Assembly: GCF_048593235.1 (NCBI RefSeq)
Contig: NC_133622.1
Location: forward strand, 246,144,055 to 246,208,054
Origin: Sminthopsis crassicaudata
Lineage: Eukaryota
Reading direction: 5' to 3'
DNA length: 64,000 nucleotides
A program made the translations under genes and the position numbers. Positions within the stretch are counted from its first letter, which is position 1, and the number at the start of each line of letters is the position of its first letter. Shown here one piece after another: positions 7,991 to 54,218 of the stretch. The notes below the pieces were generated by a model. The model did no database searches. It had not been told where the DNA came from and was given only the letters and a program-made list of their open reading frames with translations.

Positions 7991-9083
7991 CAAAAATATA
8001 TAGAAAACAGCTATTTCTAGGTAAAATAAAGGATTAATATAGAGAAGGCACTAGAATTAAATGAGTGGAATTACAGCTTATTTATTTATTTACCCTTTCG
8101 AGTTCATAGATATTTTTAAAGAATTTTTTTCCCCATGAAAAGTATATTCTTTGGATTTAGGTGAATAAGGATAAAAAAAATCTAATAAAATAGAACCCAA
8201 AAGCTATCTTTGAGCACTTGAACTCCAAGAGAATAGTTGCTGCTATTAAAAAAAAAAAAACAATGTAAGGTATTGGAAAGACCTAGGAGTTAAAGACACT
8301 GGGTTGTCTTTCTGATCTTTATATTAGCAAATTGTCATTTGCCATGAGACATATTGCTTTCCTGTGGATTCAGTAAAAATATTCAGTAAAAAAATGGTGT
8401 TGACCAAAAAAAAATTTAAGGAGTCATAAAATTTTAAAATTTTTTGTTTTATTCAGTAACTGAGATAGCAGAATTTTGACTATCAATGTGAATTAAGGAG
8501 AAATTTGGATGATTCACAAAATATAGGCCTTGAAAATTAGGAAAAAACATGTAAGTACTAGAATTTGAAATCTATAATGGAATGATTTAAACATCATAAT
8601 ACATTTCATATTTTATTGTAATTTTGATAATTCAATCTATAGGTAATCGCATTTTTACATATTATATTATTATATATGTGTGACATATAATTTTTATTAT
8701 AGTTTATGTTATATATTAAAATATAATAAGTGTTTTTATCTTCTCCCCTTCCTCAGTTTTCTTGCCTGTGTTTTGGAGACCTTCCTCTTTGATGTATTTG
8801 AATTTGTCTTTCCTCATAGTTGCTCTTTGTCTATCTGCCCTGCTGCCATCAGTTTAATGTAGTTTATGACAGTTTCTGTAATATCAGCTGAATTCATGGA
8901 TCAGCATTAGAATCGGCGCCTTCATTTTCAGCATTGCTCCAGCTGTGTACAGAATAGATGGAACCTGGTTCTCTTTGTGAAGTTTTTGAAAGGAGGAGAC
9001 AAGGAATTTCATTTTTCTCATTTCTTTGCTACCCTATTTCGGCTGTACTTTCGATCTCAATAATTTACTGGGAGCTAGCAAGT

Positions 9084-10061
9084 ATGGTCAACTTCACCAT
9101 CATCACAGAATTTCTCCTTGTCAATTTTGCCAGCATTTGGGAGCTACAGGTTCTTTATGCTATGTTTTTCATTCTGATTTATCTATCAACTTTGATGGGG
9201 AATTTCCTCACCATTATTGCTATTATCACTGACCAACACCTTCATGCTCCAATGTACTTTTTTCTAAGTAATTTATCCCTGTTGGATATGTGTTACATAT
9301 CAGTCACTCTTCCCAAATTCATTGTTAATACCCTGATAGACACTCCATCCATCTCCCTCCTGGGATGTATGGCTCAAATATTCTTAATTTTGTTTTTTGG
9401 AGGAGCAGAATTTGCTTTCCTCATGACCATGTCCTATGATTGTTTTGTGGCCATCTGCTACCCCCTGCACTATGGGGTCATCATGACACGAGCCCGGTGC
9501 TTTTGGGCAGCAATTGGCTCCTGGTTCACTGGCTTTGTCTATTCTGCCCTACACACAAGTAACATGTTTCGTTTGCCCTTTTCAGGATCCAATGTGATCC
9601 ACCAGTTTTTCTGTGATATACCACAGATATTGCGGATTGCAAACTCCGATGTATACAATACTGAATACCTACTACTTGCCATAAGCTCATGTTTTCTATT
9701 ATTGTGCTTTGTCCTTTTAATTATATCATATGCTCACATCTTCTCTAGTGTACTCAAGATCCCCTCCATGGAAGGACGCTACAAAGCCTTATCTACATGT
9801 TCCCCTCACTTGATTGTCCTTCTCTTATTTCTCCTTTCTATAATTATTTCAGTCTTGGGGCCGACATCAGACAGCTCACCGGTTCAGAACCTTCTTATTG
9901 CCATGGCTTACACAGTACTGCCCCCATTCATGAACCCTATCATTTATAGCTTGAGAAACCAGAAGATCAAAGTTGTGTTGATTAGGATAATCCGAATGGC
10001 TTTATTTCCCAAGAAGGATGTGTCTAGCCCTAAGAAAATTAAGAGGACAAAGAATGTATAG
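9084..10061 (+). CDS. Olfactory receptor, family 14-like (OR gene 1), 325 aa, with R-to-C in the DRY-equivalent motif
   Basis: OR motifs GN, LHAPMYFFLSNLS, MSYDCFVAICYPLHY, FFCDIP, KALSTCSPHL, PPFMNPIIYSLRN. Start placed at MVNFT (ATG 9084) by homology to the paralogs; the frame is open from 8958. Confidence 0.93.
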   Translation: MVNFTIITEFLLVNFASIWELQVLYAMFFILIYLSTLMGNFLTIIAIITDQHLHAPMYFFLSNLSLLDMCYISVTLPKFIVNTLIDTPSISLLGCMAQIFLILFFGGAEFAFLMTMSYDCFVAICYPLHYGVIMTRARCFWAAIGSWFTGFVYSALHTSNMFRLPFSGSNVIHQFFCDIPQILRIANSDVYNTEYLLLAISSCFLLLCFVLLIISYAHIFSSVLKIPSMEGRYKALSTCSPHLIVLLLFLLSIIISVLGPTSDSSPVQNLLIAMAYTVLPPFMNPIIYSLRNQKIKVVLIRIIRMALFPKKDVSSPKKIKRTKNV

Positions 10062-13440: not shown

Positions 13441-13815
13441 AAATGTTAAATAATAAAATTTAAAAAAGTAAATTAGGAATTATGAATAAATGAATTAAAC
13501 ATTTAAAAAGCATATTCATTGTTAAATCACATTATCCTGTGAAAATGAGTCATATTATTTGCATCTATTCCTCTGATTGGACTCTTTGACTGGAGAGCAG
13601 AGCCATGCTGCTTTTTTCCCCCTGGGAGCACCCAACACAGTCTTCTTTTAATTTTCTACAAGTTGCACTGCCTTTGCATTTTTCCTTTATCCCCTTGTGC
13701 TAAGTTCTGTTTCCCCTTCATCTTCCCCTACTCATTTCTTTACACTTAACAGAGTTCCTGATATCCAAGAGGCATTCAGTAAATGTTTATTGACTATTGA
13801 TTAAGACTGACAGAC

Positions 13816-13922
13816 TCCCAGTGGCCTATTCTTATGTGGCTGATATTTTAATAAGACTGAAGGGAGAACTTTTTTCATTGGATTGTTTATAAAATAGATT
13901 CTTCCCTAATTATTCTCAAGGG
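13816..13922 (+). promoter_or_regulatory. Candidate OR promoter module for OR gene 2
   Basis: TCCCAGTGG 13816-13824, TTTTAATAA 13846-13854, TAATTA-T-TCTCAAGGG 13907-13922. Confidence 0.6.
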
Positions 13923-16900
13923 CTGGGCGAAAAAATTCATAGCAACCCAGAGCATGATGATGTTGATATTGAATACTCTGGTGATTTCACAGCACCTTCT
14001 ACAAAAGACATTGGGCAATATATTTCACCAAGTTCTGTAACATAAAAATCACCAAAATCTCCATAGTGATAGTAGGTTCAGAGGTTTAGACTTGAGTACC
14101 TTGACATATTTTTGAATCTGCCCATCAGGATGGAATAAATTGATGAGGAATGAGATAATGTACAGATTATGTTTAGAAATGTAAGTAGATGGAGAACTGT
14201 GACAAAGACAACATATACTGTAAAGTATGCACATCAGAACGAATAACTCAGGTATTTTCATTGTGATTGTCATTATTTTTCTTTGTGACCATGAGTATGC
14301 TCAGGTGCTTAATGTATGAAGTAATGATCATGGAGATGATTTCTCTGTGATTCTTTTGTGTGTATGAGAAGTGATTTGGTGGCAGTACAGATGGTATGGT
14401 AGGTGAAATTAATCTGAATTTTACTTCTGGCTTGTCTGAGCTGTATAATCATTTCAGCTTCCCTCTGAGAATATATTCATTCTTCCTGTATGTATCAGTT
14501 GTACATGCTTATTTACTTGCTTTTTCCTTCTAGTTTACTCTAATTTCATGGAGGTCAGGGATTTCTTTACCTTTTTTTTTTTTTTCAATCCCATGTTTAC
14601 CACAATATCTGGGACATGATAGACACTTAATAAATACTTGTCAGTTTACTGTAAGTTGACTATGCATAAGCTTTAGCATCTCTGAGCCATTACCATACCT
14701 GTAACATGTGCATAGCATTATCTTTGTAACTCAGTCATGTGGAGATGGTATGTAAATATACTTTGTGAATATCAAGAGTCCTATGACAAATGAAAAATGA
14801 GTCATAATTATTGTTCTGATCTCTGATTGTAGACCATAGCTATATCTTCATTTAACTGAAATTTGTACCATTGAACACGAGGAGAGCTTGGCAAGAGTGA
14901 CAATTCCTTGTTGCATTTTGTTTGTAGCATAGTCTTTATGATGAAACCTGGTAGACATAGGAACTATATGTCGATTCTAACTTTACTTTTTTGTTTCCCC
15001 CATCCTTTTCTGTGTAAATTATTTTGCTGCAAAAAAGATGAGTTGGACTTTTGAATAAATTCACTGGAGAGAGTGCTGAATTTGGAAGCAGAAGACAATT
15101 ATTTAATTCTGGCTTTGTAATTTACAAACTGGAAAAATTAGAGTCAATTATTGTTTGTCTCTGTTGTAGAAATAAAGTACTTGGAAAATTGAACTTTAAA
15201 CTTCTAGTTTTGAGTTTCTGCTCCTATGATCATGTTTGAAATAGATATTCAGATAAAGACGATGGACTTCACTGAGAGCCTCAGCAATTCCCCAGCTATT
15301 TTCAGATAAAGTGTATGATCTTCAGTTGCTCTTTCTGTTGGAAGCTACTTTTGAATGACTTGAAATCGATGATAGCCAGTAGGTCCCCTAGGTTCTTCTA
15401 ACTGGAAAATGGACATTTTTATGTGTAGGAAATAAAGCAGTGAAATTTCTCAGTGAAAATTAAAATTAGGAGGTTGATGATATGACCTGAAACCCTCTAA
15501 ATTGGTATTTTATCATATTATCAATGGGTAATTCTAGGTCTCTGACATCTTTCTCAAGTCTGGAGCATAATACATATTTTGTTTATATAAGTGTGAGTAT
15601 ATTAATGTGTATAGGTTTATATCTATTATAAGTGAATGTATATAGATATATCTATACACACATATACTATATATAGTAAGATTGTGCTAAATCATTAAGG
15701 GCACTGAATTTTGACAATATTGTTTAAATGATTGAATTGTGAGACTTTGTGATGGGATATTTGGAAGGTTGGAGAATTAACTCCAATGTTATCTTGGGAA
15801 TTCAGATTTGTGGAAAAGTTTGGAAAGAGGCTGAAGTCTAGAAGAGTGTTTGTGGTTAAATGGAAGGGGGATACAGATCTATTTATCATCTGTCTATCTA
15901 TCATCTATCTATCTTCCTATTTATCCATCATCTGTGTCTATCTATCTATCACCTCTATAATATATGAGCATATAAACATTGTCATGTATATAAAATACAT
16001 ACTATATATATTTATATATGTAACATTTGTATATAGATTCATACACACGTATATGTATATCTACATGTAATTCCCACAATGTTTTTATGGCTGTATGTAG
16101 CTTCCATCTTTTATATCTATTAATTTATTGTCTATCATGTATCTCTCAAAATGTGTATTTGTATATCCATATATTGATCGCTATCACTACTTCCATCTCT
16201 ATCTCTATCATCTGCATTTCTACTTATACCTCTATGTCTGTCTTGCCTATCTATAAAGTAGACATAGTTTACTCTCCAGTATGTCCCTATAGAAGTAAAA
16301 TCAGAACACCACTCCTAATTCTTTTTTTAAAATAAATTATCTAGTACTATAGTTCTTATGGTAGTCAACCTGGAGAAACAGATTACTTTCACATAATAAG
16401 AAATATTATGCAAAGATTATAGCAATCATAAAAGATGACTTTGGTAGGGGTAGTGCAGATTATTGTCCAAAGCACTAATTTAATAGATGCTCAGTCTGAT
16501 GCCAAAAGGGAGAAATGAAAGGGTCACCCTAAAGTGAAATCAACTCTAAAAATCAGATCTCTTGAATTCCCACTTCCATCATTTGATCATTAAACCAGAT
16601 GGAAGATACATACTAGTCTGGTCTTTTCTGACTTGGGAGAAAGGTGCCTTCCTGGAAAAAGGAAAAATCTTACTCAGCTTATTTACAGAAAAGATACTCA
16701 TTTGAGTGATGATAAATTTATTAAATAGGGATTTTCATCCAGAAGAACAAAAAAGGCTTCTGCTAGCCATTTAAGTTTGAGGGCAGAAATGGGACATCTG
16801 TTGCTTTTGTGAAAGCAAAGTCACAATTGTGGACAGTCTTAACAAGAAGGTGGGAGCACATCGGAATAGTAAAACATTGATCAATTGCTTACTTTTAAAC

Positions 16901-17102
16901 TCGGAATTAGAGATTTTGAAATGCCTGGCAAGTGCATAAAGAAAAGGACCCCAGAGATAAGCAGTAAAGAAAACAAATAAATATATGAAGAATATTTTGG
17001 AAGTGATGACATTTCCATTCTTTCATTTTTTAAATGTAAGCCTATGACATAAATCTTAAATAATATATAGATATTGTTTAAGATCATATTTAAGATATAA
17101 TA

Positions 17103-17298
17103 TATTTACTTAAATTACATATTAATATTTAAGATATAATATATATATGTAATTTAAGTAAATTACCTATATGTAGGTAATCTATGGCTGCACAAATTAA
17201 TATTTACTTAAATTACATATATATATTTAAGATATAATATATATATATATGTAATTTAAGTAAATTACCTATATGTAGGTAATCTATGGCTGCACAAA
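17103..17298. repeat. Tandemly duplicated ~100-bp AT-rich unit, each copy with two inverted repeats
   Basis: Arms tttacttaaattacatat (17105-17122) and atatgtaatttaagtaaa (17145-17162), plus palindrome attaccta-tatg-taggtaat (17162-17181). The unit repeats at 17201-17298. Confidence 0.9.
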
Positions 17299-17410
17299 AG
17301 AGAAAGAAGGACATCTGGGTTGCACATCTCAGGAGGGACAGGGACTGAATGCCACATAAGGAATTCACAATGAATTTAGGAAATGTAACGGAGGTGGTCC
17401 CAATATCCAG
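17283..17410 (-). pseudogene. Inverted 128-bp fragment of an OR14-like coding sequence (TM2-ECL1-TM3)
   Basis: Reverse complement translates LDIGTTSVTFPKFIVNSLCGIQSLSLLRCATQMSFFLFCAAI. By manual count it has 18 mismatches in 128 nt to OR gene 2 (18606-18733) and 18-21 to genes 3-5. Confidence 0.92.
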
Positions 17411-17424
17411 ACAGAGTAATTAAA

Positions 17425-17670
17425 CAGGTAGGTAGCACCATAAAGAGTGCTGGACCTGACTCCAAGAAGATTCAATTTCGTGAGTTCAAATCCGGTCACA
17501 GACAGTTAATTGGCAATGTCATTCTTGGCAAGTTACTCTTGTGTGCCTCAGTTCCTTATCTGTAGAAAGAACTGGAGAAGTAAATGGTAAACCAATCCAG
17601 TATCTTTGCTCAGAAAACCCCCAATGGGGTCATAAAGAGTCAGAAATGAAAAAAATGACTTAACATCAAC
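17425..17670 (+). mobile_element. MIR/Mar1-type CORE-SINE (paralogous copies near 28210, 40980, 52215)
   Basis: gagttcaaatcc B-box, gtgtgcctcagttccttatctgta core, gaactggagaagtaaatggtaaacc tail. Confidence 0.75.
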
Positions 17671-18407
17671 AGAGTAATCTACTGTTTCTAGTATTAGAAA
17701 TATTTGCATTTTTTAAATAAGAGGAAAACTGCATTTAGAGTCAGAATAATTGGTTTCAAATTCTAACTTTACTTCATACAAAGCACTGAATCTGTGTGGG
17801 TTCTTCTTTACCAATCTATGAAATAATATCTTCTATAAAATTAGCTTAAGTTATATAATGTTTGCATGTTTGCAAACTACTTTCCTGAATACAGGAAATA
17901 TGAATACAACATATGAAATATGCAATAAAAATAGGAATCTTTCCCTCACTTTAATCTTTCATTCTCTCTCTAATGAGATTTATATATATATTTACAAATA
18001 TATGTATTTAAGTGTGTATAAGTATATATGTATATGAGCACAATGGGTGTGTGTGTGTACATGCTCACATGATGAACTCTATTTCCCTCCTTAGTGATGA
18101 TAGCCTTCTTTATTATCTTTGCATTAGTATCATTCACTTTCCTAATGTTCATCGTGTATCACTTCCTCAATATATTTTACAGAATTAAGTATTTAAAAGT
18201 CTGTTCCAGAACTATTGGATGCAGCTCTGCCTTCAGTTCATTCTGGCCTTAAAATATAGTGTAATTTTGTTTTGGTTCAGGCTAAAGGGGACAAAATAGT
18301 TTTCAAGTTCTAGCTAAATAAGTATTTAATTCTTTCTCCTTTTAACACGTTGTTTAATTGCTATTCATTCTTATTTGTTTTTAATTAAACTACAGCACTG
18401 CAGCAGG

Positions 18408-19364
18408 ATGGGCAACTTGTCAATCATCACAGAGTTCCTCCTCATGGAGTTTTCCAGCACACGTGAGCTGCAGGTCTTACATGCTGTGCTGTTCCTGCTG
18501 ATTTACCTGGCAGCCCTTCTGGGGAACCTTCTCACCTGTGCTGCAATTATCACTGACACACACCTTCACTGTCCTATGTATTTTTTCCTGAGTAACTTAT
18601 CCCTGCTGGATATTGGATCCATCTCTGTCACACTTCCTAAATTTGTTGTGAATTCCTTGAGTGGTGTTCAGTCCCTGTCCCTCCTGGGATGTGCTGCCCA
18701 GATGTTCTTCTTTCTCTTTTTTGCAGCCACAGAGTTTGCTTTGCTTGTGGCCATGTCCTATGACCGCTTTGTGGCCATCTGTCAGCCCCTCCATTATGGT
18801 ATCATCATGACTCCAGCACGTTGTCTCTGGGCAGCAGCTGGCTCATGGCTCAGTGGGCTTCTTTATTCAGCCGTACACACAGGGAACATGTTCCGGCTGC
18901 CCTTCTCAGGATCTAATGTGATCCACCAGTTTTTCTGTGACATCCCTCATGTCTTGAAAGTCTCAACCTCGGATGTGTTTAATACTGAGTTTATATTAAT
19001 TGTAGTAAGCTTGTGTTGTTTGTCATGCTGCTTTGCCTTTTTAATTGCATCCTATGCTCGCATCTTCTCCAGTGTGCTCAAGATTCCTTCTGTGGAAGGA
19101 CGCTACAAGGCCATTTCAACCTGTTCCCCTCAGTTGATAATCCTCATGTTATTCCTCATTTCTATAATGCTTGCTGTCCTCAGGGAGGCATCAGACACAT
19201 CACCTATCCAAAACCTTTTAGTTGCAGTGGCTTATACAACTTTACCTCCCCTGCTGAACCCTCTCATCTATAGCCTGAGGAACCAGAAGGTCACAGCTGC
19301 CATGGGCAAGATGATCAAAAGGATAGTTTTTCCCTACACTTCCTTGAAAATATTAAAAAGTTGA
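18408..19364 (+). CDS. Olfactory receptor, family 14-like (OR gene 2), 318 aa, intact
   Basis: LHCPMYFFLSNLS, MSYDRFVAICQPLHY, FFCDIP, KAISTCSPQL, PPLLNPLIYSLRN. First ATG in frame is 18408; the track start at 18375 is a non-ATG codon. Confidence 0.96.
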   Translation: MGNLSIITEFLLMEFSSTRELQVLHAVLFLLIYLAALLGNLLTCAAIITDTHLHCPMYFFLSNLSLLDIGSISVTLPKFVVNSLSGVQSLSLLGCAAQMFFFLFFAATEFALLVAMSYDRFVAICQPLHYGIIMTPARCLWAAAGSWLSGLLYSAVHTGNMFRLPFSGSNVIHQFFCDIPHVLKVSTSDVFNTEFILIVVSLCCLSCCFAFLIASYARIFSSVLKIPSVEGRYKAISTCSPQLIILMLFLISIMLAVLREASDTSPIQNLLVAVAYTTLPPLLNPLIYSLRNQKVTAAMGKMIKRIVFPYTSLKILKS

Positions 19365-20879
19365 AAAGTATACATTTAGGGTCTCAAATGTGTGAGGTGA
19401 TACATTAGGTCATTTAGAAAAGACACCCAAAAACAGCGTCATGTAGGAAAATGCCTCATAGGGGAAATATTACATTGGGCAGAATGAATATGTTATTTAT
19501 TTTAGCATAACTTGAACCAACTTGTAAGTGCTTATTGACTATAGTGAAATAATCATGACACTAACCCATTGTCTCTGAGCCACATTGCCCTCAGAGGAAT
19601 GGATGGAACACTCATTGATCCCCTGTGAGAGCAGTAGGTTAGCTTAACCAAAAGCAGCCATCAAGATGGTTGTGTTGTTTCTACCCTAGATACGAATCTT
19701 GGCTTGTCACTTCCATTTCACATTTTTGTTTCCCTTTGTCTTTATGATGGTAGTGATCTTCTTTGCATGTTGAAGATGTATTCCTCATTCCAAACAGATA
19801 TAGTCAGATAGGCACACACACATACATACACATTCATGTAAAACACATGTGTACACATTTCCATACACATGTGTGTTTGTGTGTGTGTGCATGCTCTAGT
19901 TTTATGGGTGAGAATTTAAACTTTTTATTCCTTAAGTTGCTCATTTGTAACATGGCATGGTTGGCTTGATGATTTCTATATTGCCTCCATCTAAAGTTTT
20001 TAGTTATGATTTTGCAAAAAAAAAATTTCTTTATACATTAAGCTGGGATTGATATTCAAATACATCAACATTATACATTATGTGTCTTTTCCCTTTATGT
20101 TCTTATTGCATTTAATTTTCTACTGCACCTAGACAAATAAATTCCTTATCTCTTCTGGTAGATTCTCTGTTCACTTTCCAATAGCATATATCTAGGGCAA
20201 GTGGTACAAATATTGGTTCCTTTGAAGTAATCATGTGCATTTCAATTGTCACAGTATGAAATTACTATTATACAAAATATGCTGATGGCTTCTAGTTCAC
20301 GGAATATGTCCAGTCTGAAATTGAAAAATACACCCACCTCAGTGATTTAATTATTTAGTCTAATTAGGATTTAGTTAAATTTCTTGGTGACAAAGATATT
20401 TTCATTTTTATCTTTATGTCCTTAGCACTTTTTTTAGTTAGAATAGGTGCTTCATAAATTATTGTATATTAATTCCAAATTTCTTAAGAACTGNNNNNNN
20501 NNNNNNNNNNNNNNNNNNNNNNNNNNNNNNNNNNNNNNNNNNNNNNNNNNNNNNNNNNNNNNNNNNNNNNNNNNNNNNNNNNNNNNNNNNNNNNNNNNNN
20601 NNNNNNNNNNNNNNNNNNNNNNNNNNNNNNNNNNNNNNNNNTTTATTTCATGGGATACCATTGACAAAAATTTGATTAATTGGAGAAGAGAGAAATAGAG
20701 AGGTGGGAGGAGAGATGGGGGAGAGAGAAAGAGAGAGATAAAAAGGAAGAGATAGAGAGGGACAAATAGAAAGAAAAAAAAGGACAGAGGAAGAGAGGAA
20801 CAGAGGAGCAGATGAAGAGAGGGAGAGAAAGATTGCAGTATGAATTATTTATTATTATTATTAAATGATCATGAGTTAG

Positions 20880-27700: not shown

Positions 27701-28008
27701 AAAAAGGCTTCTGCCAGCCATTCAAGTTTGGAGGCAGAAATGGGACATCTGTTTCTTTTGTAAAAGCAAAGTCACAATCAGGGACAGTCTTATCAAGAAT
27801 AAAGAAGCCCATTGGAACAGTAAAATGTTAGCCAATTACTTACTTGTAAACTCAGAATCAGAGATTTTGTAATCCCTGGAAAGTGCATAAAAGAGTGGTC
27901 CCCAAAGATGAGTTTAGCAAAGAAAATAAATAAAGATAGGAAGAATATTTTGGAAGTGATGACATTTCCACTCAATTCTTTTTAATTTAAGCCTATAACA
28001 TAAATCTT

Positions 28009-28147
28009 TTTTTCCTTTTTTAAAATTAATTTTATAATTATAAAATTTTTTTGACAGTATATATGCATGAGTATTTTTTTTATAACATTATCCCTTGTAT
28101 TCATTTTTCCAAATTTTCCCCTCCCTCCCTCTACTTCCTCCCCTAGA
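28009..28147 (-). mobile_element. Severely 5'-truncated L1 3' end with 15-bp TSD
   Basis: TSD tataacataaatctt at 27994-28008 and 28148-28162. Body matches the L1 3' UTR at 62420-62570. Empty site in the paralogous unit at about 17043-17060. Confidence 0.85.
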
Positions 28148-29275
28148 TATAACATAAATCTTAAACTACATATATATTGGTAATTTGAATATGGGATAGA
28201 GTAATTGAGTGGTTGGTAGCATTGTAAAGAATATTAGACCTGAAGTCAGAAAGACTCAATTTCATGATTTCAAATCTGACCTCAGACACTTAATTGGAAA
28301 TGTCATGGAAGGCAAGTCACTCTTGTGTGCCTCAATTCTAATCTGTAGAATAAGTTGGAGAAGTAAATGGTAAACCAATCTAGTATCTTTGCTCAGAAAA
28401 CCCCCAGTGGGGTCATGGAGAGTCCGAATTGAAAAAGTGATTTACCATCAACAGAGTATGCACTGTTGCTAGTATTATAGATATTGGCATTTTTTAAAAT
28501 AAGAGAGACACTGCATTTAGAATCAGAATAATCAGTGAAGATCTAACTTTATTATTAATAGTCTTTGTTACTTCATACAAAACATTGAATCAATATGAGC
28601 CCTTATTTACTATCCTAAGATTTAATATCCTCAGTAATATTAGCTTAAATTGTATAATACCTGAATGCTTTCAAATGCCTTCCTGAATATAACTTATGAA
28701 ACATGTAATAAAAGTATAAATCTTTCCCTCATCCTAATCTTTCATTTTCTCTCTATGAGATTTATAGATAGATACATATAGGGATAAATATGTATATATA
28801 TACACACATACATATATGTATACATACATATATACTAATGGATATATACAAATATATTTATTTATTCATATACATATGTATATATTTATATATGTATACA
28901 TACATATGTGATCATAAACATGTGTGTGTCTATTTATGTGTGCACATGCTGACATGCATGAAATCCATTTCCACCTTTAATGGTGACAGCCTTCTTTATT
29001 ATCTTTGTAGTAGTATCATTCACATTCCTAATGTTCATCATGTATAACTTCTTCTGGATATTCTACAGGATCAAGTATTTAAAACTCTGTTGCAGAACTT
29101 TGGGATGCAGCTCTGTCTTCAGCTCATTTTGGCCTAAAATATAGTTTAATTTTGCTTTTGTTCAGGCTTAAGCTTCTATCTAAATAAGTATTTTAATTCT
29201 TTCTCATTTTCAACACATTTTTACTGCTACTCATTGGGTTATTTGTTTTCAGTTAAATTACAGCACTGCAGCAGG

Positions 29276-30223
29276 ATGGGCAACTTGTCAATCATCACAG
29301 AATTCCTCCTCATGGAGTTTTCCAGCACACGTGACCTGCAGGTCTTACATGCTGTGCTGTTCCTGCTGATTTACCTGGCAGCCCTTCTGGGGAACCTTCT
29401 CACCTGTGCTGCAATTATCACTGACCCACACCTTCACTGTCCTATGTATTTTTTCCTGAGTAACTTATCCCTTGTAGATATTGGGACCATCTCTGTCACA
29501 CTTCCTAAATTCATTGTGAATTCCTTGAGTGGTGTTCAGTCCCTGTCCCTCCTGGGATGTGCTGCCCAGATCTTCTTCTTTCTCTTTTTTGGAACAACAG
29601 AGTTTGCTTTGCTTGTGGCCATGTCCTATGACCGCTTTGTGGCCATCTGCCAGCCCCTCCACTATGGCATCATCATGACTCCAGCACGTTGTCTCTGGGC
29701 AGCAGCTGGCTCATGGCTCAGTGGGCTTCTTTATTCAGCCGTACACACAGGAAACATGTTCCGGCTGCCCTTCTCAGGATCCAATGTGATCCACCAGTTT
29801 TTCTGTGACATCCCTCATGTCTTGAAAGTCTCGACCTCGGATGTGTTTAATACTGAGTTTATATTAATTGTAGTAAGCTTGTGCTGTTTGTTATGCTGCT
29901 TTGCCTTTTTAATCACAACCTATGCTCGCATTTTCTCCAGTGTGCTCAAGATTCCTTCTGTGGAAGGACGCTACAAGGCCATTTCCACATGCTCCCCTCA
30001 GTTGATAATCCTCATGTTATTTCTCATTTCTATAATGCTTGCTGTCCTCAGGGACACATCAGACACATCACCTATCCAAAACCTTTTAGTTGCAATGGCT
30101 TATACCACACTGCCTCCCCTGCTGAACCCTCTTATCTATAGCCTGAGGAACCAGAAGGTCACAGCTGCCATGGGCAAGATGATCAAGAGGATAGTTTTCC
30201 CCCCAATTTTTGGAAAGTATTAA
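29276..30223 (+). CDS. Olfactory receptor, family 14-like (OR gene 3), 315 aa, intact
   Basis: Same OR motifs as gene 2; ATG at 29276. Confidence 0.96.
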   Translation: MGNLSIITEFLLMEFSSTRDLQVLHAVLFLLIYLAALLGNLLTCAAIITDPHLHCPMYFFLSNLSLVDIGTISVTLPKFIVNSLSGVQSLSLLGCAAQIFFFLFFGTTEFALLVAMSYDRFVAICQPLHYGIIMTPARCLWAAAGSWLSGLLYSAVHTGNMFRLPFSGSNVIHQFFCDIPHVLKVSTSDVFNTEFILIVVSLCCLLCCFAFLITTYARIFSSVLKIPSVEGRYKAISTCSPQLIILMLFLISIMLAVLRDTSDTSPIQNLLVAMAYTTLPPLLNPLIYSLRNQKVTAAMGKMIKRIVFPPIFGKY

Positions 30224-31632: not shown

Positions 31633-33456
31633 TTACATTGGAGTTGTTTGCACTGGGCACAGCCCTGTTGGTTTAAAAGGCCTGTATTCTCCCCAAGTGT
31701 AATCCATTTTTGCAATCTGATTGCCTTTTGACTGACTTATCAGGTAATCCCTTTCTGCCATGTGATTGCTTCTCTGCTGATTGATTAAATCAGAGTCCTG
31801 GCCTTCTAAAGGTTCTTTGGGTGTAACATCAGCTGCCATCATGCCCCAAGTCTTTTTTGCCTGGGGCCCTGGACCTGGGCCCCTCATCCCATTTCCCTGA
31901 ATTATTCTACACTCTGATGCCCAATGGAGTCCTCTGTTGCATTTTGGACATGGGGTTTTAGGTCTTCTCTCACCCTGTCTTCTCACTGTATCTCCATACC
32001 TACACTGAGCTCTTAGATGTCCAATTTTTCCACATTGAAAACATCTCCGAGTTTCTCTAGAAGGCCCTTGCCAGGAGGGACCCTGTCTTTCCACATTCAT
32101 CATTGTCCGGGTGTAAAAAGCATTTGTTCCCACTGTAGCACAGCGTCTTATGATCTCCTCTAAAGGAGCATCTTTGTCTAATCCCCATATAATTCTTTTG
32201 CAAATCTCATTGGCATTTTCCTTAGCCAGATGTCTGGTCATTATTTCTGTAGCTGAATTTTCTCCAATAGTTCTTTTGACAGCAGTTTGCAAACGTCCCA
32301 CAAAATCTGCAAAAGGTTCATTGGGACCTTGCTGTATTTTAGTGAAAGCCTCTCCACGATCTTTCTGTCCAGGAAGGACACCCCAAGCTTTTATTGCAGC
32401 CTTAGCAATTTGTTCATATATTGTCATGGTATAATTAATCTGTTCCGAATTCTCTCCATATTGACCTTCACCAGCTAAGTGCTCAAAAGTGAATTGTGTG
32501 TTAACTCCTATTTCCAAATTGCATCTGACTTGAATTTTACATAATTCATGAAATTCCGCAAGCCATAATAAATTTTCTCCAGGCTCCAGACATGTCCTTG
32601 CTATGGATTTCCAATCATTCGGGGTTAGGACTTCATAAGACAAACCATCTAGTAACATTTTGACATAAGCTGATGTAGCCCCATAAAGGGTACAACCTTT
32701 TTTCAAATCCTTAATTGTATTCAAATCTAAAGGTGCATATCTTCTCCTTTTTTTACCTACAGAGTCAGTATTTTCAATCACAGGATATGCATGTATAAAA
32801 TCACTTATATCCTGTCCTTCTCTCTTAGCTTTAACCAATGCTTTTTCTAATCTTGTCATAGGCTTAGGCTTCTTCACAGGCAATTCTGTTTGTGTTTCTG
32901 CCTCTTCCCCTCTTTCTTCCTCCATCTCTGAAGGTGGGGTTGATGTGGGCCTGTCAATAATCTGTTCTCTAGGCAGGGTTGAAGCTTCTTCAAGAGAATC
33001 ATACCATAATTCCTCATTTAAATCCTCTTGCTCTAGGGAAAGATCTTGATCTTTCCTTTTTTCCTCACACTTCCTCCTCTGTTCATTTTTAGAACTTTTC
33101 CTTCTCCTACAACTTGCTTGATAGTTTAAGGCTAATTGAACTATGTTGTAGATATAAAATACTTCTGCAGAAATTGAACGAGGCCCATTTTTTGCTTGAA
33201 ATTCTTTCATTTCATATCCCACTAGCTTCCATTTATCTACATCTATTTTTTCTTCCTCTAAGAACCAAGGGGATGTGCGTCTTAATGCAGCCAAGAGTTT
33301 AGCAATCTGTACCCAGGTTACAAGTAAACTCTGCTCCTCAATTATGTTGATTATACTCTCTATAGTACCACTCCTGAATGGAGCTGAGGTTGCGTCTGGG
33401 GCTGAGGTTGAGTCGGCTGAGGTCCAGGGATTGAATATAGCTAACATCTGCCCCAT
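31633..33456 (-). CDS. gag: Intact betaretrovirus-like Gag polyprotein, 607 aa (MA, CA, NC with two CCHC knuckles, C-terminal extension)
   Basis: MGQ myristoylation-type start, major homology region IQQGPNEPFADFVGRL, zinc knuckles CFQCGKIGHLRAQC and CPKCNRGLHWASEC, GNGMRGP tail motif. Confidence 0.96.
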   Translation of the reverse strand: MGQMLAIFNPWTSADSTSAPDATSAPFRSGTIESIINIIEEQSLLVTWVQIAKLLAALRRTSPWFLEEEKIDVDKWKLVGYEMKEFQAKNGPRSISAEVFYIYNIVQLALNYQASCRRRKSSKNEQRRKCEEKRKDQDLSLEQEDLNEELWYDSLEEASTLPREQIIDRPTSTPPSEMEEERGEEAETQTELPVKKPKPMTRLEKALVKAKREGQDISDFIHAYPVIENTDSVGKKRRRYAPLDLNTIKDLKKGCTLYGATSAYVKMLLDGLSYEVLTPNDWKSIARTCLEPGENLLWLAEFHELCKIQVRCNLEIGVNTQFTFEHLAGEGQYGENSEQINYTMTIYEQIAKAAIKAWGVLPGQKDRGEAFTKIQQGPNEPFADFVGRLQTAVKRTIGENSATEIMTRHLAKENANEICKRIIWGLDKDAPLEEIIRRCATVGTNAFYTRTMMNVERQGPSWQGPSRETRRCFQCGKIGHLRAQCRYGDTVRRQGERRPKTPCPKCNRGLHWASECRIIQGNGMRGPGPGPQAKKTWGMMAADVTPKEPLEGQDSDLINQQRSNHMAERDYLISQSKGNQIAKMDYTWGEYRPFKPTGLCPVQTTPM

Positions 33457-38916: not shown

Positions 38917-41913
38917 TTGGGTCAGAGGATCCATAGTATTCAAGAATATGATGCTATTTACATTGAATACTCTGGTGATTTCTCAGCACCTTCTCTAAAA
39001 GACACTGGGCAATCAACATATTTTACTAATTCGACAACATAAGAATCATCAAAATCTCCACAATGCCTGCAGAGTTGAATAGCTCGCCATGCTTTTGAGT
39101 CTTTAAATGAGAATAGAATGTATTGGTGAGGGAAGTGATAGTTTTGAGATTCATTTTAGAATTATAAGTAAATAGTACATCGACAATGACAACATACACT
39201 GGAACATACACATATCAAAACAAGTTACTCAGGTACTGTCCTTTTCATGATGGTTACAATTATTTTTCTTTGCTGATTCTTTTGTGTGAAAGGCATTTTA
39301 GCTTCACAGTGTGAATAGTATGTTAGGTTGGAATTAAGACCTTAGCCTGAATTCTGTTTCTGACTCTTCTGATCTGTGTAATCTTTTTGACTTCCCTTTG
39401 AGATTTTCTTATATGTATCAGTTGCACAAGCTTATTTGCTTAACCTAGCTGTAACATGTGCATAGTATAATCTTTGTAGCTCACAAAGTTATTCCGAGAC
39501 TTCATCGGAGATGATATATATCTATAACTATATATCTATATAAAACATACTTTGGGAATATGAAAAATTCCATGGAAACATGAGTCATATGGTTCTTATC
39601 TATGATCATAGACTCCAGTCTACCTTCCATTAATTGGAAAATTGTAATACTGATCACAAGGAGTGTTGAGCAAGAGGGACAATTTCTTGTTACACTTTGT
39701 CTATAATTTAAACTTTGTCATAGAGCACTCCAGAAATCACTGGAGCACATAGGAGCTGTGTATAAGTTCTAACTTCACTTCTTTGTTACTATCTATCTAA
39801 TCTTTTACTTACCTCTTTTTATATAGATACATATATATACACATAAATACATGAGTATATAAACACTCTTTCTTTTATATAAACACAATTTATTATAGCT
39901 ATACATGTAAGATACAATTATGTATATGTAGATACACACTCACATATCTGTACATCTGCATATCATTACATCAATACCTCAGTTATATTCTTTCATATTT
40001 ATTTCCTATTATCTATCTCTTTATATGTTTATTTAGATATCCACATATCCTTCTGTCTCTAACTATATTTCTCCATCTTTGCCTCTACCTTTATCTTTGT
40101 CTTATTCTATCTACATTGGTAGACAAAGTTTTCTCTCCAGCAGGTATCTGTAGACATAGAATCACCCTGACATTTCTAATTCCTTTTCTCAATTGATTAG
40201 CTCTTTCATTAGTTCATGCTTATAATAGCTGAGCTGGGGAGATAGATTCCATTCAAATGGTAAGAAATAGTATGCTGAGAATATAAGAATCATAAATATT
40301 AGCTCTGTTAAGGGCAGTATAGCATTCATTTTATAGATAATAGGACAGATTCTCAGAGGAAGCAAGAAGCCAGAGATGAAAAGGTGACCCTAAAGGTGAA
40401 ATGCATAGAAGGGAGTAAAACTAGCTTTGAAAATTAGATCTCCTGAATTCCTAGTTCTAGTTTCTCATCATTGAATCAGATGGAAAGCATATATTACCCT
40501 TAGCCTAGGTTTTCTCTGACTAAGGGAAAGGTCCCTTCACAAGAACAAAGAGAAACCTTATTCACAAATTTTTTTTTTCAGTGAATGAGGATTAAAAGGG
40601 AACATATTCAAGAAGAGCAAGGAACAAAAAATGTTCAAATTTATGGGCACAATTGGGACGTGTGTTTCTTTTACGAAAGCAGAGTCACTAATGGGTACAG
40701 TCTTAGCAAGAATGAGGAAGCACATCTGAAAAATAATATATTGACCAGTTGTTTTGTAAACTCAGAATCAGAGCTCTTGAAAAGCTTAGCAAGTGCAAAA
40801 AAAAAAAGGCTGCAAAAATGAGAATAACAAAGGAAATAAACAAAAATATGTGGAGCATTTTGGAAGAGATTTCATTTTTATTCTATCACATCCTTTTTAG
40901 TTTAAGTCCATGACAAATCTTAAACCATATGTATTGATTATTTGACTGGAGGATAAAGCAATTGAGCATCCAATAGCACTGCATAGCATTTCAGACTTAA
41001 AGTCAAGAAGACTCAATTTCATGAGTTCAAATCTTGCCTCAGATAATTATTGACAATGTGACCCTGGGCAAGTCATTTAACCCTATTTGTCTTAGTTCCT
41101 CATCTGTAAAATAAGCTGAAGAATGAAATGGCAACCTGTTGCAGTTTCTTTGCCAAGAAAAGCCCAAATTGGGTCATAGAATGTCAGAACTGAAAGATGA
41201 TTTAACAGCAACAGAGTAATCCTTGTTAATGTTTTCATAGCTCTTTGTATTTATTTTTATAAGAATGAAACTACTTTTATAGAGAGAATAATTGGTTTCA
41301 TATTCTGGCTTTGCTATTAATGGTTTTTGTTACTATGTACGAAACGTTGAATCATTTTGAGCTTTTGTGAAAAAATATTATCAATAAAATCAGCTTAATT
41401 TTAGTAAGGTTTTAATACTTTCAAACCACTTTTCTGGACACAAACCTATGAAATATGTATTAAAAGTGTTAAATTTTCCCTCATTTCATCTTTATCTCAC
41501 TATCTATCCTGATCTATAAATAGATGTATGGATAGACATATAATTATGTATGTATATAGCTACATAGATGTGTGTATATAAATACATGTATTTATATGTG
41601 TAAATATGCATGTTCTCACATATCTGTATTTATGTTTGCATGTACATGCTCGAAAGCCATTTCTGACCTTAGTGGTGATAGTTTTCTTTATTATCTTTGT
41701 AATTCACTTTCCGAATTGTTCATCATATATAACTTCCTCTGATCATTTTGCAAGGCTAAGCTTTTAAAACTTGGTTCCAGAACTATTGGAATTAGCCTCA
41801 TCATTTCTACACAAGCTTTGCTTTCAGCTGATTTTGACCTTAAAATACAGTGTAATTTTGCTTTTGCTCAAGTTTAATGGGACAAATTAGTTTCCAACTT
41901 CTAACTGAATACA

Positions 41914-42054: not shown

Positions 42055-42158
42055 CTAACTGAATACAATTTTATTTCTTTCTTTCTTTTCAACAGTTTGG
42101 GCCTCCCTGATACTTAAACTTTTATTTGTTTTCAGTTAAATTACAGCACTGCAGTAGG

Positions 42159-43085
42159 ATGAGCAACTTGTCAATCATCACAGAATTCCTCCTCATGGAG
42201 TTTTCCAGCACACGTGAGCTGCAGGTCTTACATGCTGTGCTGTTCCTGCTGATTTACCTGGCAGCCCTTCTGGGGAACCTTCTCACCTGTGCTGCAATTA
42301 TCACTGACCCACACCTTCACTGTCCTATGTATTTTTTCCTGAGTAACTTATCCCTTGTGGATATCGGCAACATCTCTGTCACACTTCCTAAGTTCATTGT
42401 GAATTCCTTATGTGGCGTTCAGTCCCTGTCCCTCCTGGGATGTGCTGCCCAGATGTTCTTCTTTCTTTTCTTTGTAGTCACTGAGTTTGCTTTGCTTGTG
42501 GCCATGTCCTATGACCGCTTCATAGCCATCTGCCAGCCCCTCCACTATGGTATCATCATGACCCCAGCACGTTGTCTCTGGGCAGCAGCTGGCTCATGGC
42601 TCAGTGGGCTTCTTTATTCAGCTGTACACACAGGAAACATGTTCCGGCTGCCCTTCTCAGGTTCCAATGTGATCCACCAATTTTTCTGTGACATCCCTCA
42701 TGTCTTGAAAGTTTCAACCTCTGATGTGTTTAATACTGAGTTTGTATTAATTGTAGTAAGCTTGTGCTGTTTGTTATGCTGCTTTGCCTTTTTAATCACA
42801 ACCTATGCTCGCATTTTCTCCAGTGTGCTCAAGATTCCTTCTGTGGAAGGACGCTACAAGGCTATTTCCACATGCTCCCCTCAGTTGATAATCCTCATGT
42901 TATTTCTTGTGTCTGGAATGATTGCAGTCCTCAGGGAGGCATCAGACACATCACCTATCCAAAACCTTTTAATTGCAATGGCTTATACAACATTACCTCC
43001 CCTGCTGAACCCTCTCATCTATAGCCTGAGGAACCAGAAGGTCACAGCTGCCATGGGCAAGATGATCAAGAGAATGTTTTTTTAA
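42159..43085 (+). CDS. Olfactory receptor, family 14-like (OR gene 4), 308 aa, intact
   Basis: Same OR motifs; ATG at 42159. Confidence 0.96.
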   Translation: MSNLSIITEFLLMEFSSTRELQVLHAVLFLLIYLAALLGNLLTCAAIITDPHLHCPMYFFLSNLSLVDIGNISVTLPKFIVNSLCGVQSLSLLGCAAQMFFFLFFVVTEFALLVAMSYDRFIAICQPLHYGIIMTPARCLWAAAGSWLSGLLYSAVHTGNMFRLPFSGSNVIHQFFCDIPHVLKVSTSDVFNTEFVLIVVSLCCLLCCFAFLITTYARIFSSVLKIPSVEGRYKAISTCSPQLIILMLFLVSGMIAVLREASDTSPIQNLLIAMAYTTLPPLLNPLIYSLRNQKVTAAMGKMIKRMFF

Positions 43086-49152: not shown

Positions 49153-52100
49153 ATGAGTCCGAGATTCCATGGAAACCCAGAGTATGATGATGTTTTCCAT
49201 GAATACTCTGGTGATTTCTCAACACCTTCTCCAAAAGATACTGGGCATTATATTTGACCAAGTTCTACAATGTAAGAGTCATAAAAAATTTCCAATGCCT
49301 GCAAGTTCAGAAGTTTATATTTGAATACCTTGCCATAGTTTCGAGTCTGCCTATGAGAATGGAATGAATTGGTGAGGAAAGAGATTGTCTCAAGATTATG
49401 TGTACAAAAATAGATAATCTAATGACAATAACTGGAATATAGATGCACATCAGAACAAACAACTGAGGTATTTTCATTATGATTGTGTTTCTTAGTGACT
49501 GTAAGTTTGCTCAGATGCTTCAGATGTGATCTCAAAATCATGGTGATGATCTGTCAGTGATTTTTTTATGTGCAAGGTGGTTTGGGATCCCAATGTAGAT
49601 AATATGATGAGTTGGAATTAATAGGACTTTAGTCTGAATACTCTTCTGAGCTATGCAATCTTTCAGACTTCTCTCTTTTGTACATACTTATTATATTGAA
49701 TATATTTATTTACCACCTTCTTTCTTCCATTTGGCTGTAAGTTCATTGAGATCAGGACACTCTTTGCTTTATAATTCCATTGCTTACCACAGTGTCTGGG
49801 AAATAGCTGGCACTTAATAAATGTTTGTTGACTTACTGTGATTTGACAATATTAATTTTACTCTCCCAGAGCCTCCCTAACATAACTCTAGTATGTGCAT
49901 AGTATTACATTTGTAGCTCAAAGAGTTATTATATTGTGGCTCATCAGAGATGATGTAAGTAACATACTTTGTGAACATCAAGAGTATTCTGGAAACATGA
50001 ATCATAATTATTGTTTTATTCTATGATAATATGTCCCAGTTATACCTTCCATTAAACATAAATTTATGCTACTTATCACAAGGAATGTTGGGTAAAAGAG
50101 TCAATTTCTTGTCACACTTTCTTTGCCTGTATTTTTGTTTTATGATGGAGTGCTCTAAAGGTAACTGGAAGACAAAAACATTCTGTGTGTCAGTCTAACT
50201 TCATTTCTTTCCTCCATCCCTTCATCTGTAAATTATTTTTGTTGCAAGAAAGATGAATTAGACTTTTGAACAAATTCCCTGGAAGGAGTGCTGAATTTGG
50301 AAAGAGAAGACAACTATTTAACTCTGACTTTATCATTTACAAATTGGAAAGCTTAAGAGTCAATTACTGCATGTTTCTGTTCTTCCTCTATAAATAAAGC
50401 ACTTGGATATTTCAGTACTAATGTGTTTCTGCTCCTATGATTATATTTGAAAGAGACTTTCATAAAGGGATGAATGGATTTCATTGAGGGCCTCAGCTAT
50501 TTCCCAGTATTTTCAAAAGGTGTATGTCCTTGAGTTATTTTTTCCAATGGAGGCCACTTTTGAATGGTTTGAAGTAGATGCCATATTTCCTAGTTTCTTC
50601 TGAATGGAAAATGGAAATTTGCCCATGCATGAAATGAAACAAATATTGCTCATTTTTTCAGTGAAAATTAGAATTAGGCTACTCCTGAAAAAAAACTTGA
50701 AACATTTTAAACTTGTGTTTTGTTATGTTGTCTTCTGAGCATATTAGGTCTGTGGCTTCTTTCTTACTTTTGGTTATAATGGGTGAAAGAGAAACCTGAA
50801 GAATAATACATAGTTTGTTTATATGTGTGTATTTGTGTGCATGTAAATGTGAATGTATATAAGTGTAAATGTGCTACAGTTGAATGAATACAGTTCTACT
50901 TATGTGGCAGGAGTTCTACTTATTGAATTCATGGTCACTGAGTTTTGGTTATGCTGCTGAAATGGTTGAATTATGAGTTTAAGTGCTGAGATATTTGGCC
51001 AGTTAGACACTCAATTCTGATGTTGACTTGAGAGTCCAGTTTTTGGGGAAAAGTTGGGAGAGAATGAGAACAAGAAGAGTATTTGTGGAGAAGTGGAGGG
51101 ATAATACAACTTCCTTCCTTCCTTCCATCTATCCATTCATCCATCCTCTTTCTATCTTTCTTTACATGTATACATGCACACACATATAAACATTGTTCAA
51201 ATAGAAACAACACATTTACATATGTGTAAAACACATTTATGTGTTTATAGACATATAAACATATATGTATATATCAACTGTCTCAATATCTCTATTGCTT
51301 TCTGTAGCATAAATTTATATATCTACCTATTCATTTATACACTATAATCTATCTCTCTGTGTATAGATATTTGTATTAGTATAACTATCTCTATCTTTAT
51401 TTTTATCTCTTTCTGCCTCTATCTTTCTCTATTTCTATTATCTCTACCTGTACCTTAATCTCTAGCTGTTTTGCTGATCTGCATTCAGAGACATAATTTT
51501 CATTGACTTCAGAAACAAAATCATAGTGCCATTTATATTGTTTTCCAGAGTGAATTAACTCTTGGGCTTAGTTGGGGACAGTGCAAGTTATATTTTCCAA
51601 AGTGCTAATTTTCGGGATACTGGGCCTGATCCTCAGAGAAGGCAAAAGAAGGAGATCGGTGAACACTAAGGCTGAAATGCCTAGAAAGGGGTAAAATGAC
51701 TCTAAAAAGGGGATCTCTTGAAATCCCAGTTTTATCTTCTGAACATTGAACCAGATGAAAAACTTATGCTAGTATTAGGTTAGGTCTTGTCTAATTAGGG
51801 GAAAGATGCCCTTGCAATAACAATAGGAAAAACCTTATTCTTATTTATAGCAATGATTCTCAGTGAATAAGAATAAAAAGGAACTTATTCAGATGGCACT
51901 TACCTTTGAAGGTTCAAATGTGGGCATACATTTTTAGAAAGCAGATTCACTAATGTGGATAGTTTTAGAAGTACACCTGAACAGTGATATTTTTGTCTNN
52001 NNNNNNNNNNNNNNNNNNNNNNNNNNNNNNNNNNNNNNNNNNNNNNNNNNNNNNNNNNNNNNNNNNNNNNNNNNNNNNNNNNNNNNNNNNNNNNNNNNNN

Positions 52101-53276
52101 NNNNNNNNNNNNNNNNNNNNNNNNNNNNNNNNNNNNNNNNNNNNNNNNNNNNNNNNNNNNNNNNNNNNNNNNNNNNNNNNNNNNNNNNNNNNNNNNNNNN
52201 NNNNNNNNNNNGTAGCATTCTATAGAGTGTCAGACATGAAGTCAAGAAGACTCAATTTTGTCAGTTCGAATCTAGCTTCAGACACTCACTGGTTGTATTT
52301 CCCTGGGCAACTCACATAACCTTGCTTGCTTCAGATCCTCACTGGAAAAGGAAATGGCGAACCACTCCAGCATCTTTGCCAAGCAAAATGCAAATGGGTC
52401 ATGGAGAGTTGCACACAGCTGAAAAATGACTTAACAACAATACTGAACAATCACTCTTACCACTTTCAAAGCTATTTTTGTTTTTTCCCGTAAGAAGGAA
52501 ATTGCATTTAGGGTAAGAAGAGTTGGTTTCAAGTTCTGACTTTACTACCAATGGTCTTTGTTACTTTGTTCAAAACACTAAATAGGTTTTGCCCTTGCTT
52601 TACCATCCTGTAAGATAATACTATTGATAAAATTAATTTTATATGTATTTTGAATTTTTTCACAGCAGTTTTCTGAATACAACCCTTTAAAATATGCAAT
52701 AAAAGTGTTAATCTTTTCCTCATCTTCATTTTTTTCTCTCTCTTTCACCCTCTCTCTTTCTCTCTCTAAATAGAAAGACAGAAGTAGATATATGTATAGA
52801 TATTGATTTATTTATATAGCTATAAATATAAATCTGTATATATAAATATATTTTATATATGTATTAATGTATATGTATGTGTTCAAATATGTGACTGTGT
52901 GTGTGTGAATACACAAGTATGAAATCCATTTCTACTCTTAGTGGAGATAGTCTTTTTTTAATTATCTTTATATAATGGGTAATTTCCTCTGGTCATTTTG
53001 CAGGACTAAGTATTTAAAACTGGGTTCCAGAACAATTGAACCTCTCTTAACCTCCTTATTTCTTTTCCCAGCTTAGTTTTCAGTTAGTTATGGCCTTACA
53101 TCATTACATACATTACAATAATGTAATTTTGCTTTTATTCAGGTTTAATGGGACAGAATAGCTTTGAAGTTTCATCTAAATAAGTATTTTAATTCTTCCT
53201 TCTTTTGAACACTTTTCTGTTCCCTGACACTTAAACTTTCATTTGTTTTTAGTCAAATTACAGCATATCAGCAGGG

Positions 53277-54218
53277 ATGAGCAACTTCTCAATCATCACA
53301 GAATTCTTCCTCACGGAGTTTTCCAGCACACGTGAGCTGCAGGTCTTACATGGTGCACTGTTCCTGCTGATTTACCTGGCAGCCCTTCTGGGGAACCTTC
53401 TCACCTGTGCTGCAATTATCACTGACCCACACCTTCACTGTCCTATGTATTTTTTCCTGAGTAACTTATCCCTTGTGGATATCGGCAACATCTCCGTCAC
53501 ACTTCCTAAATTTATTGTGAATTCCTTGTGTGGCATTCAGTCCCTCTCCCTCCTGGGATGTGCTGCCCAGATGTTCTTCTTTATCCTTTTTGCAGCCACA
53601 GAGTTTGCTTTACTGGTGGCCATGTCCTATGACCGCTTTGTGGCCATCTGTCAGCCCCTCCACTATGGCATCATCATGACCCCAGCACGTTGTCTCTGGG
53701 CAGCAGCTGTCTCATGGATCAGTGGGCTTCTTTATTCAGCTGTACTCACAGGGAACATGTTCCGGCTGCCCTTCTCAGGATCCAATGTGATCCACCAGTT
53801 TTTCTGTGACATCCCTCATGTCTTGAAAGTCTCAGCCTCTGATGTGTTTAAGACTGAGTTTGTGTTAATTGTATCAAGTTCATATCTTTTCTTATTCTGT
53901 TTTGCCTTTTTAATTGCATCCTATGCCCGTATCTTCTCCAGTGTGCTCAAGATTCCTTCTGTGGAAGGACGCTACAAGGCCATTTCAAACTGTTTTCCTC
54001 AGTTGATAATCCTCATGTTATTTCTCTCTTCTTCAATGATGGCAGTTTTCAGGGACACATCAGACACATCACCTATCCAAAACCTTTTAATTGCAATAGC
54101 CTATACCACACTGCCTCCCCTGTTGAACCCTTTCATCTATAGCCTGAGGAACCAGAAGGTCTCAGCTGCCATGGGCAAGATGATCAAGAGGATATTTTTT
54201 CAGAGAAAAAAATGTTAA
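53277..54218 (+). CDS. Olfactory receptor, family 14-like (OR gene 5), 313 aa, intact ORF with a divergent TM6 motif (KAISNCFPQL)
   Basis: OR motifs as above; ATG at 53277. Confidence 0.95.
   Translation: MSNFSIITEFFLTEFSSTRELQVLHGALFLLIYLAALLGNLLTCAAIITDPHLHCPMYFFLSNLSLVDIGNISVTLPKFIVNSLCGIQSLSLLGCAAQMFFFILFAATEFALLVAMSYDRFVAICQPLHYGIIMTPARCLWAAAVSWISGLLYSAVLTGNMFRLPFSGSNVIHQFFCDIPHVLKVSASDVFKTEFVLIVSSSYLFLFCFAFLIASYARIFSSVLKIPSVEGRYKAISNCFPQLIILMLFLSSSMMAVFRDTSDTSPIQNLLIAIAYTTLPPLLNPFIYSLRNQKVSAAMGKMIKRIFFQRKKC

Follow-up and report, generated by a model that had tools for sequence, protein, structure and literature searches.

About 1 kb upstream of the coding exon of an intact olfactory receptor (OR) gene of the fat-tailed dunnart, Sminthopsis crassicaudata, lies a short piece of OR coding sequence in the opposite orientation, which raises the question of how this piece arrived there and whether it acts on the gene that it adjoins. 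The stretch of DNA analyzed here, referred to as the window, comprises 64,000 nt (NC_133622.1:246,144,055-246,208,054), and all positions are window positions. It contains five OR genes, termed g1 to g5, all of which are encoded on the + strand and match the Pfam family 7tm_4, and whose relatives, as retrieved by a word search, are named 'olfactory receptor 14I1-like'. The coding regions of g2 to g5 are 91-95% identical in pairwise comparisons, whereas g1 shares only ~72% identity with them. The inverted fragment upstream of g2 is probably the product of an ancient insertion in the g2 lineage, made by a repair patch or a template switch, which has decayed neutrally ever since and probably resides inside an intron of the g2 5' untranslated region (5' UTR).

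An inverted copy of receptor coding sequence

An inverted-repeat search of the window identifies two arms of 128 nt, 17283-17410 upstream of g2 and 18606-18733 within its coding exon, which are 86% complementary and spaced by 1195 nt. The upstream arm, hereafter the fragment, is aligned by blastn to the g2 exon with E = 1.9e-37 and to the same stretch of g3, g4, and g5 at 85-88% identity. When all five receptors are compared with the 64 kb by tblastn, only one stray OR piece is found outside the five genes, running from 17410 to 17279 on the minus strand. It consists of 44 open codons and aligns to residues 78-121 of the 329 residues of the g2 open reading frame (ORF), corresponding to residues 67-110 when counted from the ATG at 18408. 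Within the receptor, this span reaches from the end of transmembrane segment 2 (TM2) to most of TM3, and lies between the motifs PMYFFLSNLS (TM2) and MSYDRF (end of TM3). Position, spacing and degree of identity of the inverted copy had been given in the original prediction, and both coordinates and figures proved correct in the repeat search, by blastn and by tblastn.

The fragment is identical to none of the five genes and combines states seen in g2 to g5, again as had been described before. Nine of its 128 positions carry private states, seven of which alter the encoded residue, and the remaining variable positions form a mosaic of the states present in g2-g5. None of the states private to g2 is found in the fragment, which differs from each of the local gene copies by 12-14%. 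Two exact-pattern metagenome scans, one for the right junction and one for a fragment-private stretch, returned 0 matches.

These differences bear on the reality of the fragment, since a chimeric or inverted read segment could in principle have been built into the assembly. This is scarcely credible for a piece that is diverged from each of the local genes and has private changes of its own, and whose edge is present a second time in a slightly diverged tandem unit (see below). Furthermore, two samples from two studies contain 81-87% of the words sampled from 13700-19600, a figure that is not junction-specific. As the fragment is diverged from all local copies and its left edge was caught up in a later tandem duplication, an assembly artefact appears very unlikely as its source.

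Insertion site, polarity and origin

To the left and to the right of the fragment, the region upstream of g2 is collinear with those upstream of g3 and g4. At the corresponding sites, which the original prediction had placed at about 28190 and 40950, g3 and g4 have a short, mutually alignable sequence that contains no OR piece (Table 1), and the absence of the fragment from the paralogous positions was thereby corroborated. The counterpart site of g5 falls in a run of N (51999-52211), and polarity was read from g2, g3, and g4. Kimura two-parameter (K2P) distances of the flanks, taken on both sides of the fragment, are 0.23 for g2-g3, 0.37-0.40 for g2-g4, and 0.36-0.41 for g3-g4, from which the branching order of the units is read as ((g2,g3),g4). 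Together with the empty sites of g3 and g4, this order places the insertion in the g2 lineage, with the empty state read as ancestral.

At the junctions, the left flank ends in GGTAAT and the right flank restarts with GACAGAGTAATT, and ~8-10 bp of the target have been lost in g2 relative to g3 and g4. Possible microhomology amounts to 1 nt (T) or, with an alternative placement, 3 nt (TGG) on the left and to 1 nt (G) on the right, the exact placement of the junctions being ambiguous owing to later divergence. Read against the empty sites of g3 and g4, the junctions show neither a target-site duplication (TSD) nor a poly(A) tract or signal. The left junction is abutted by an AT-rich palindromic tract, which expanded from a short ancestral AT-rich stretch and, when folded as single-stranded DNA, reaches -43.2 kcal/mol, compared to -18.3 +/- 2.7 kcal/mol for shuffled sequences (z = -9.3). 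Palindromic AT-rich DNA is a plausible place for fork stalling or breakage. The lack of a TSD and of poly(A), the small target deletion, the microhomology of 1-3 nt and the hairpin-prone neighbour all agree with the earlier suggestion of a templated insertion captured at a break.

We therefore propose the following course of events, in which the break or stall is inferred from the neighbourhood of the insertion. The site ~1 kb upstream of the g2 coding exon would have broken or stalled beside the unstable, hairpin-forming tract, and ~127 bp of OR14I1-like coding sequence would have been copied into it as the reverse complement, with replacement of the ~8-10 bp of target. This copying may have been a DNA-repair patch, yielding a class 2-type templated sequence insertion (TSI), or a switch-and-return during replication, in which the template was the opposite strand of a receptor exon close by, possibly that of g2 itself; the data do not separate the two variants, which are considered roughly even. 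Thereafter, the fragment would have decayed as neutral non-coding DNA within the probable 5'-UTR intron of g2.

Both variants have well-described counterparts. Class 2 TSI polymorphisms (TSIPs), which are read as break-repair patches, have neither TSD nor poly(A), and show a microdeletion and microhomology at their junctions (PMC5110952). The fragment shares all of these features, as well as the short template from elsewhere in the genome and the transmission through the germ line, but differs in that its template belongs to the neighbouring gene family, possibly being the exon 1.2 kb away, and in that it goes back to an ancient event, presumably fixed rather than polymorphic. An RNA intermediate has been proposed for TSIs, yet this is less likely here, as the expression of the gene is restricted to olfactory neurons; the fragment is confined to a single exon and hence bears no splice mark that could reveal an RNA origin. 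The four-point switch-and-return model describes the exchange of a few bases for a reverse-complement copy of sequence close by (PMC5453318). As in such template switching, including fork stalling and template switching (FoSTeS) and microhomology-mediated break-induced replication (MMBIR), a short stretch upstream of g2 was replaced by a reverse complement and a hairpin-capable inverted repeat was created. In contrast to the four-point switch, however, the copy is 127 nt long and the nearest present template lies 1.2 kb away, which moves the event towards the scale of FoSTeS/MMBIR. The kind of event is already known, and the case would be a tidy but ordinary one, a neutral relic.

No further OR similarity adjoins the fragment on either side when the window is searched by tblastn with the five OR proteins, and the flanks run straight into sequence collinear with g3 and g4, leaving no spare space for a full inverted OR pseudogene upstream of g2, of which the fragment might be the last remnant, the rest having been deleted. 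Although tandem OR arrays often contain pseudogene debris and an open frame of 44 codons has been retained, such an origin would require two exact deletions, or exact excision in both g3 and g4, and is highly improbable. A separate insertion of ~141 bp, specific to g3 (28008-28148), lies 30 bp from the g3 counterpart of the g2 insertion point. Its two ends are marked by direct repeats of 13 bp, ATAACATAAATCT (27995 and 28149), and it looks like a retroposed repeat fragment, so that the same spot was struck independently in two paralogues.

Age and donor of the fragment

The later history of the left junction provides a first indication of relative age. Over ~95 aligned positions, two tandem units of ~100 bp (Table 1) are distinguished by two substitutions and a single 4-bp indel, and unit 1 ends in a copy of the 16 nt with which the fragment begins (17181-17196 = 17283-17298). 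Since these 16 nt are present in both units, the duplication must postdate the insertion. In a maximum-likelihood tree built on 121 unambiguous sites of the fragment and the genes, the fragment is located inside the g2-g5 clade, beside g2 and g3, with a bootstrap value of 44. Its terminal branch has a length of 0.116, compared to 0.02-0.07 for the genes, whereas the neutral per-lineage distance of the flanks, calculated as half of the g2-g3 flank K2P, is ~0.115. The agreement of the branch with the flank distance indicates that the fragment has changed since the g2/g3 split as neutral DNA has. On this comparison, the insertion appears to be old, roughly of the age of the g2/g3 duplication, and it is without sign of constraint.

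The branch lengths of the genes are to be seen in connection with an unusual pattern in their coding exons. Comparison of the coding regions 18408-19361, 29276-30220, 42159-43082, and 53277-54215 and their flanks gave a divergence at 4-fold degenerate sites of 7.5-14% among g2-g5, about one third of that of the introns and flanks (K2P 0.23-0.41), and only 13 changes in 954 nt are private to g2. This points to a homogenisation of the g2-g5 coding exons since the units separated, for which gene conversion restricted to these exons is the simplest explanation. Homogenised coding regions would explain the mosaic of states in the fragment, and they imply that the present g2 exon differs from the exon at the time of copying.

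The question of the donor is affected in the same way. The original prediction had assigned the fragment to another or an ancestral paralogue, which is possible but not required, as the exon of g2 in its earlier state would be an equally good donor. The template may thus have been g2 via a local template switch, a neighbouring gene or a paralogue outside the window, and a local donor is weakly indicated by the position in the tree. At the protein level, no donor was identified among 120 relatives, the best match being 73% (P0007, P0010, and P0031); P0007 is an additional dunnart paralogue protein, which is 91% identical to g2.

Several points weigh against this reconstruction. The argument from the rate relies on ~14 substitutions in 121 sites, for which the Poisson range is ~0.06-0.19, and a diverged donor paralogue from outside the window, for example a gene similar to that of P0007, would allow a younger date than estimated for the insertion. 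Polarity and dating are based on paralogues within one genome, where the g5 counterpart site is hidden by the run of N. Moreover, the AT-rich tract is partly younger than the insertion, and may hence be a consequence or a coincidence and not the cause.

Predicted intronic position and possible pairing with the coding exon

Whether the fragment could reach the RNA of g2 depends on where transcription starts. OR promoters are marked by O/E and homeodomain sites at most 200 bp from the start site, and most OR 5' UTRs are interrupted by introns (PMC3247239). Upstream of g2, a conserved promoter-like block (Table 1) harbors a homeodomain-type site, TAATTA, joined to an O/E-like half-palindrome (13906-13923), a pattern with 4 occurrences compared to 0.01 expected. 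The O/E-like site (13914-13923) fits the consensus at eight of ten positions, while a strict O/E pattern has no match in g2. The block is followed by a conserved candidate 5' splice site, and hardly any variation exists among g2-g5 in the 40 nt before the ATG, where a pyrimidine tract and AG are located. Given the conserved block, donor and acceptor, the fragment is likely intronic: the predicted g2 intron, which is a prediction only, would extend from about 14252 to 18395 (~4.1 kb) and contain the fragment ~985 nt before the acceptor. The presence of the fragment in the g2 pre-mRNA, as supposed in the original prediction, is therefore plausible as judged from the sequence.

Two observations adjoin this prediction. 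A donor-like CAG/GTAGGT is located at 17426/7 (17423-17436), 16 nt downstream of the fragment, and occurs in g2 only, as g3 and g4 differ; use of this site could in principle turn the fragment into exonic sequence. At 60786-60987, the promoter-like block recurs for a fifth time with 79% identity to the block of g2, which implies a sixth array gene beyond 64000, perhaps coding for P0007. A scan of 16000-19600 against Rfam gave chance-level matches only.

If transcribed together, the two arms would pair. In the predicted fold of g2 17283-18733, the long-range duplex of the arms dominates the minimum free energy (MFE) structure, comprising 110 Watson-Crick pairs, 10 G:U pairs and 8 mismatches over 128 positions with -209 kcal/mol, so that the intramolecular duplex put forward in the original prediction is feasible in silico. 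A predicted intron that contains the fragment and a fold dominated by the duplex are what would be seen if the fragment was a functional self-antisense element of the g2 pre-mRNA, pairing with the exon over 128 bp and kept by selection, which might lead to ADAR hyper-editing of TM2-TM3, to slower splicing or nuclear retention, or to small RNAs acting on paralogues. The evolutionary evidence is at odds with this, as the branch of the fragment equals the neutral expectation, albeit in one genome only, and shows no sign of constraint above the intron background. Selection for pairing of the + strand RNA would be visible as an excess of G:U over A:C, but the 10 G:U compared to 4 A:C are not significant (p = 0.18).

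The exon arm gives a similar picture. The ORF of g2 is intact, with no more than its 13 private changes, while neutral DNA changed by ~10%, and any effect of the duplex is therefore no strong block; however, the frame could also have been kept intact by gene conversion. Four of the 13 g2-private changes are in the exon arm, compared to ~1.7 expected by our own arithmetic, an excess that is not convincing. Among the listed sequencing runs that contain the stretch, none is recorded as RNA. Known ADAR duplexes between exon and intron are short, imperfect and conserved, and in GRIA2 it is the downstream intron that carries the complementary sequence. Such duplexes define editing sites in known genes, namely GRIA2 Q/R and R/G and GABRA3 I/M (PMC1920255, PMC3479170), and speak in favor of a self-antisense element, as here, too, intronic sequence is complementary to a coding exon of the same, in this case predicted, pre-mRNA. 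Unlike these cases, the duplex of the fragment would be long and 86% complementary, and its predicted intronic arm is located upstream of the exon and changes at the neutral rate.

A production of small RNAs meets further difficulties. Perfect 21-mers shared by the fragment and the genes number 0 for g2, 5 for g3, 4 for g4, and 0 for g5, and the longest perfect duplex run with g2 is 20 nt. The hairpin RNAs (hpRNAs) of Drosophila and the endogenous small interfering RNAs (endo-siRNAs) of mouse oocytes represent hairpin-RNA loci that arose from inverted duplicates of genes or pseudogenes, and olfactory neurons are not known for canonical RNA interference. Like such loci, the fragment is an inverted partial gene copy that is able to form double-stranded RNA (dsRNA) with related sequence (PMC3616710, PMC11239679), but it differs from them in that one arm is the own exon of a working gene and in that the arms have diverged to 0-5 perfect 21-mers per paralogue. 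Long dsRNA is also poorly processed in mammalian somatic cells (PMC11239679). Taken together, the neutral rate, the non-significant G:U excess, the lack of a perfect 21-mer with g2 and the intact g2 gene leave the predicted functional effect of the duplex unsupported, and a self-antisense element kept by selection is distinctly unlikely. Nothing in the comparisons points to selection for pairing, and the prior for a regulatory role of the fragment is low.

One specific form of such an effect can nevertheless be described, although its prospects are poor. In olfactory neurons choosing their receptor, the fragment might pair with the nascent exon and cause adenosine-to-inosine (A-to-I) clusters in TM2-TM3 or a lower output of g2, or alternatively, CAG/GTAGGT might exonise the fragment and bring both arms into the mature mRNA. 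If this was true, a repair accident would have given one receptor gene a natural self-antisense brake, and a duplex that formed and acted would offer an unusual natural experiment on the effect of a long intron-exon duplex on a gene that is expressed singly per neuron.

The positions of the features are collected in Table 1. Apart from the features discussed above, a retroviral gag ORF with 607 open codons is found between g3 and g4 (31633-33456, - strand), which matches Pfam Gag_p10, Gag_p24, Gag_p24_C, and zf-CCHC_5, and a further ORF of 209 codons with a GTG start (63022-63651, - strand) has no Pfam match.

Table 1. Positions of the OR genes, the inverted fragment and associated features in the window.
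Feature	Position	Strand	Basis or remark
g1	8958-10061	+	OR, 7tm_4
Promoter-like block of g2	13835-14040	+	conserved in five array units
Candidate 5' splice site CAG/GTATTT, exon end 14251	14246-14259	+	conserved in g2-g5
AT-rich palindromic tract, only upstream of g2, abuts left junction	17058-17282		paralogue alignment, DNA folding
Two tandem units, ~100 bp	17102-17298 (17102-17196; 17200-17298)		sequence comparison
Inverted OR14I1-like coding fragment (insertion proper, ~127 bp)	17283-17410	-	inverted-repeat search, blastn, tblastn
Right flank, GACAGAGTAATT	17411-17422		collinear with g3 and g4
SINE-like element common to g2, g3, and g4	from ~17427, core 17482-17504		paralogue alignment
Candidate pyrimidine tract and AG acceptor(s), 18395 or 18403, before ATG	18370-18407	+	conserved
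g2	18375-19364, likely ATG 18408	+	329-aa ORF; OR, 7tm_4
g2 coding region from ATG	18408-19364	+	OR14I1-like, 318 codons, intact, 7tm_4
Complementary arm in g2 coding exon, codons 67-109 from ATG 18408	18606-18733	+	inverted-repeat search
Empty (pre-insertion) site upstream of g3	28179-28201		paralogue alignment
g3	29234-30223	+	OR, 7tm_4
Empty (pre-insertion) site upstream of g4	40936-40958		paralogue alignment
g4	42126-43085	+	OR, 7tm_4
g5	53277-54218	+	OR, 7tm_4

As an ancient insertion, the fragment is a well-resolved example of a germ-line templated insertion or long template switch, in which the empty site, the junctions, the relative age and the later history are legible from paralogues in one 64-kb window. 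It would also represent a sample of the coding sequence of the array from before the later homogenisation, and in this way supports exon-confined gene conversion in the OR14I1-like array of the dunnart.

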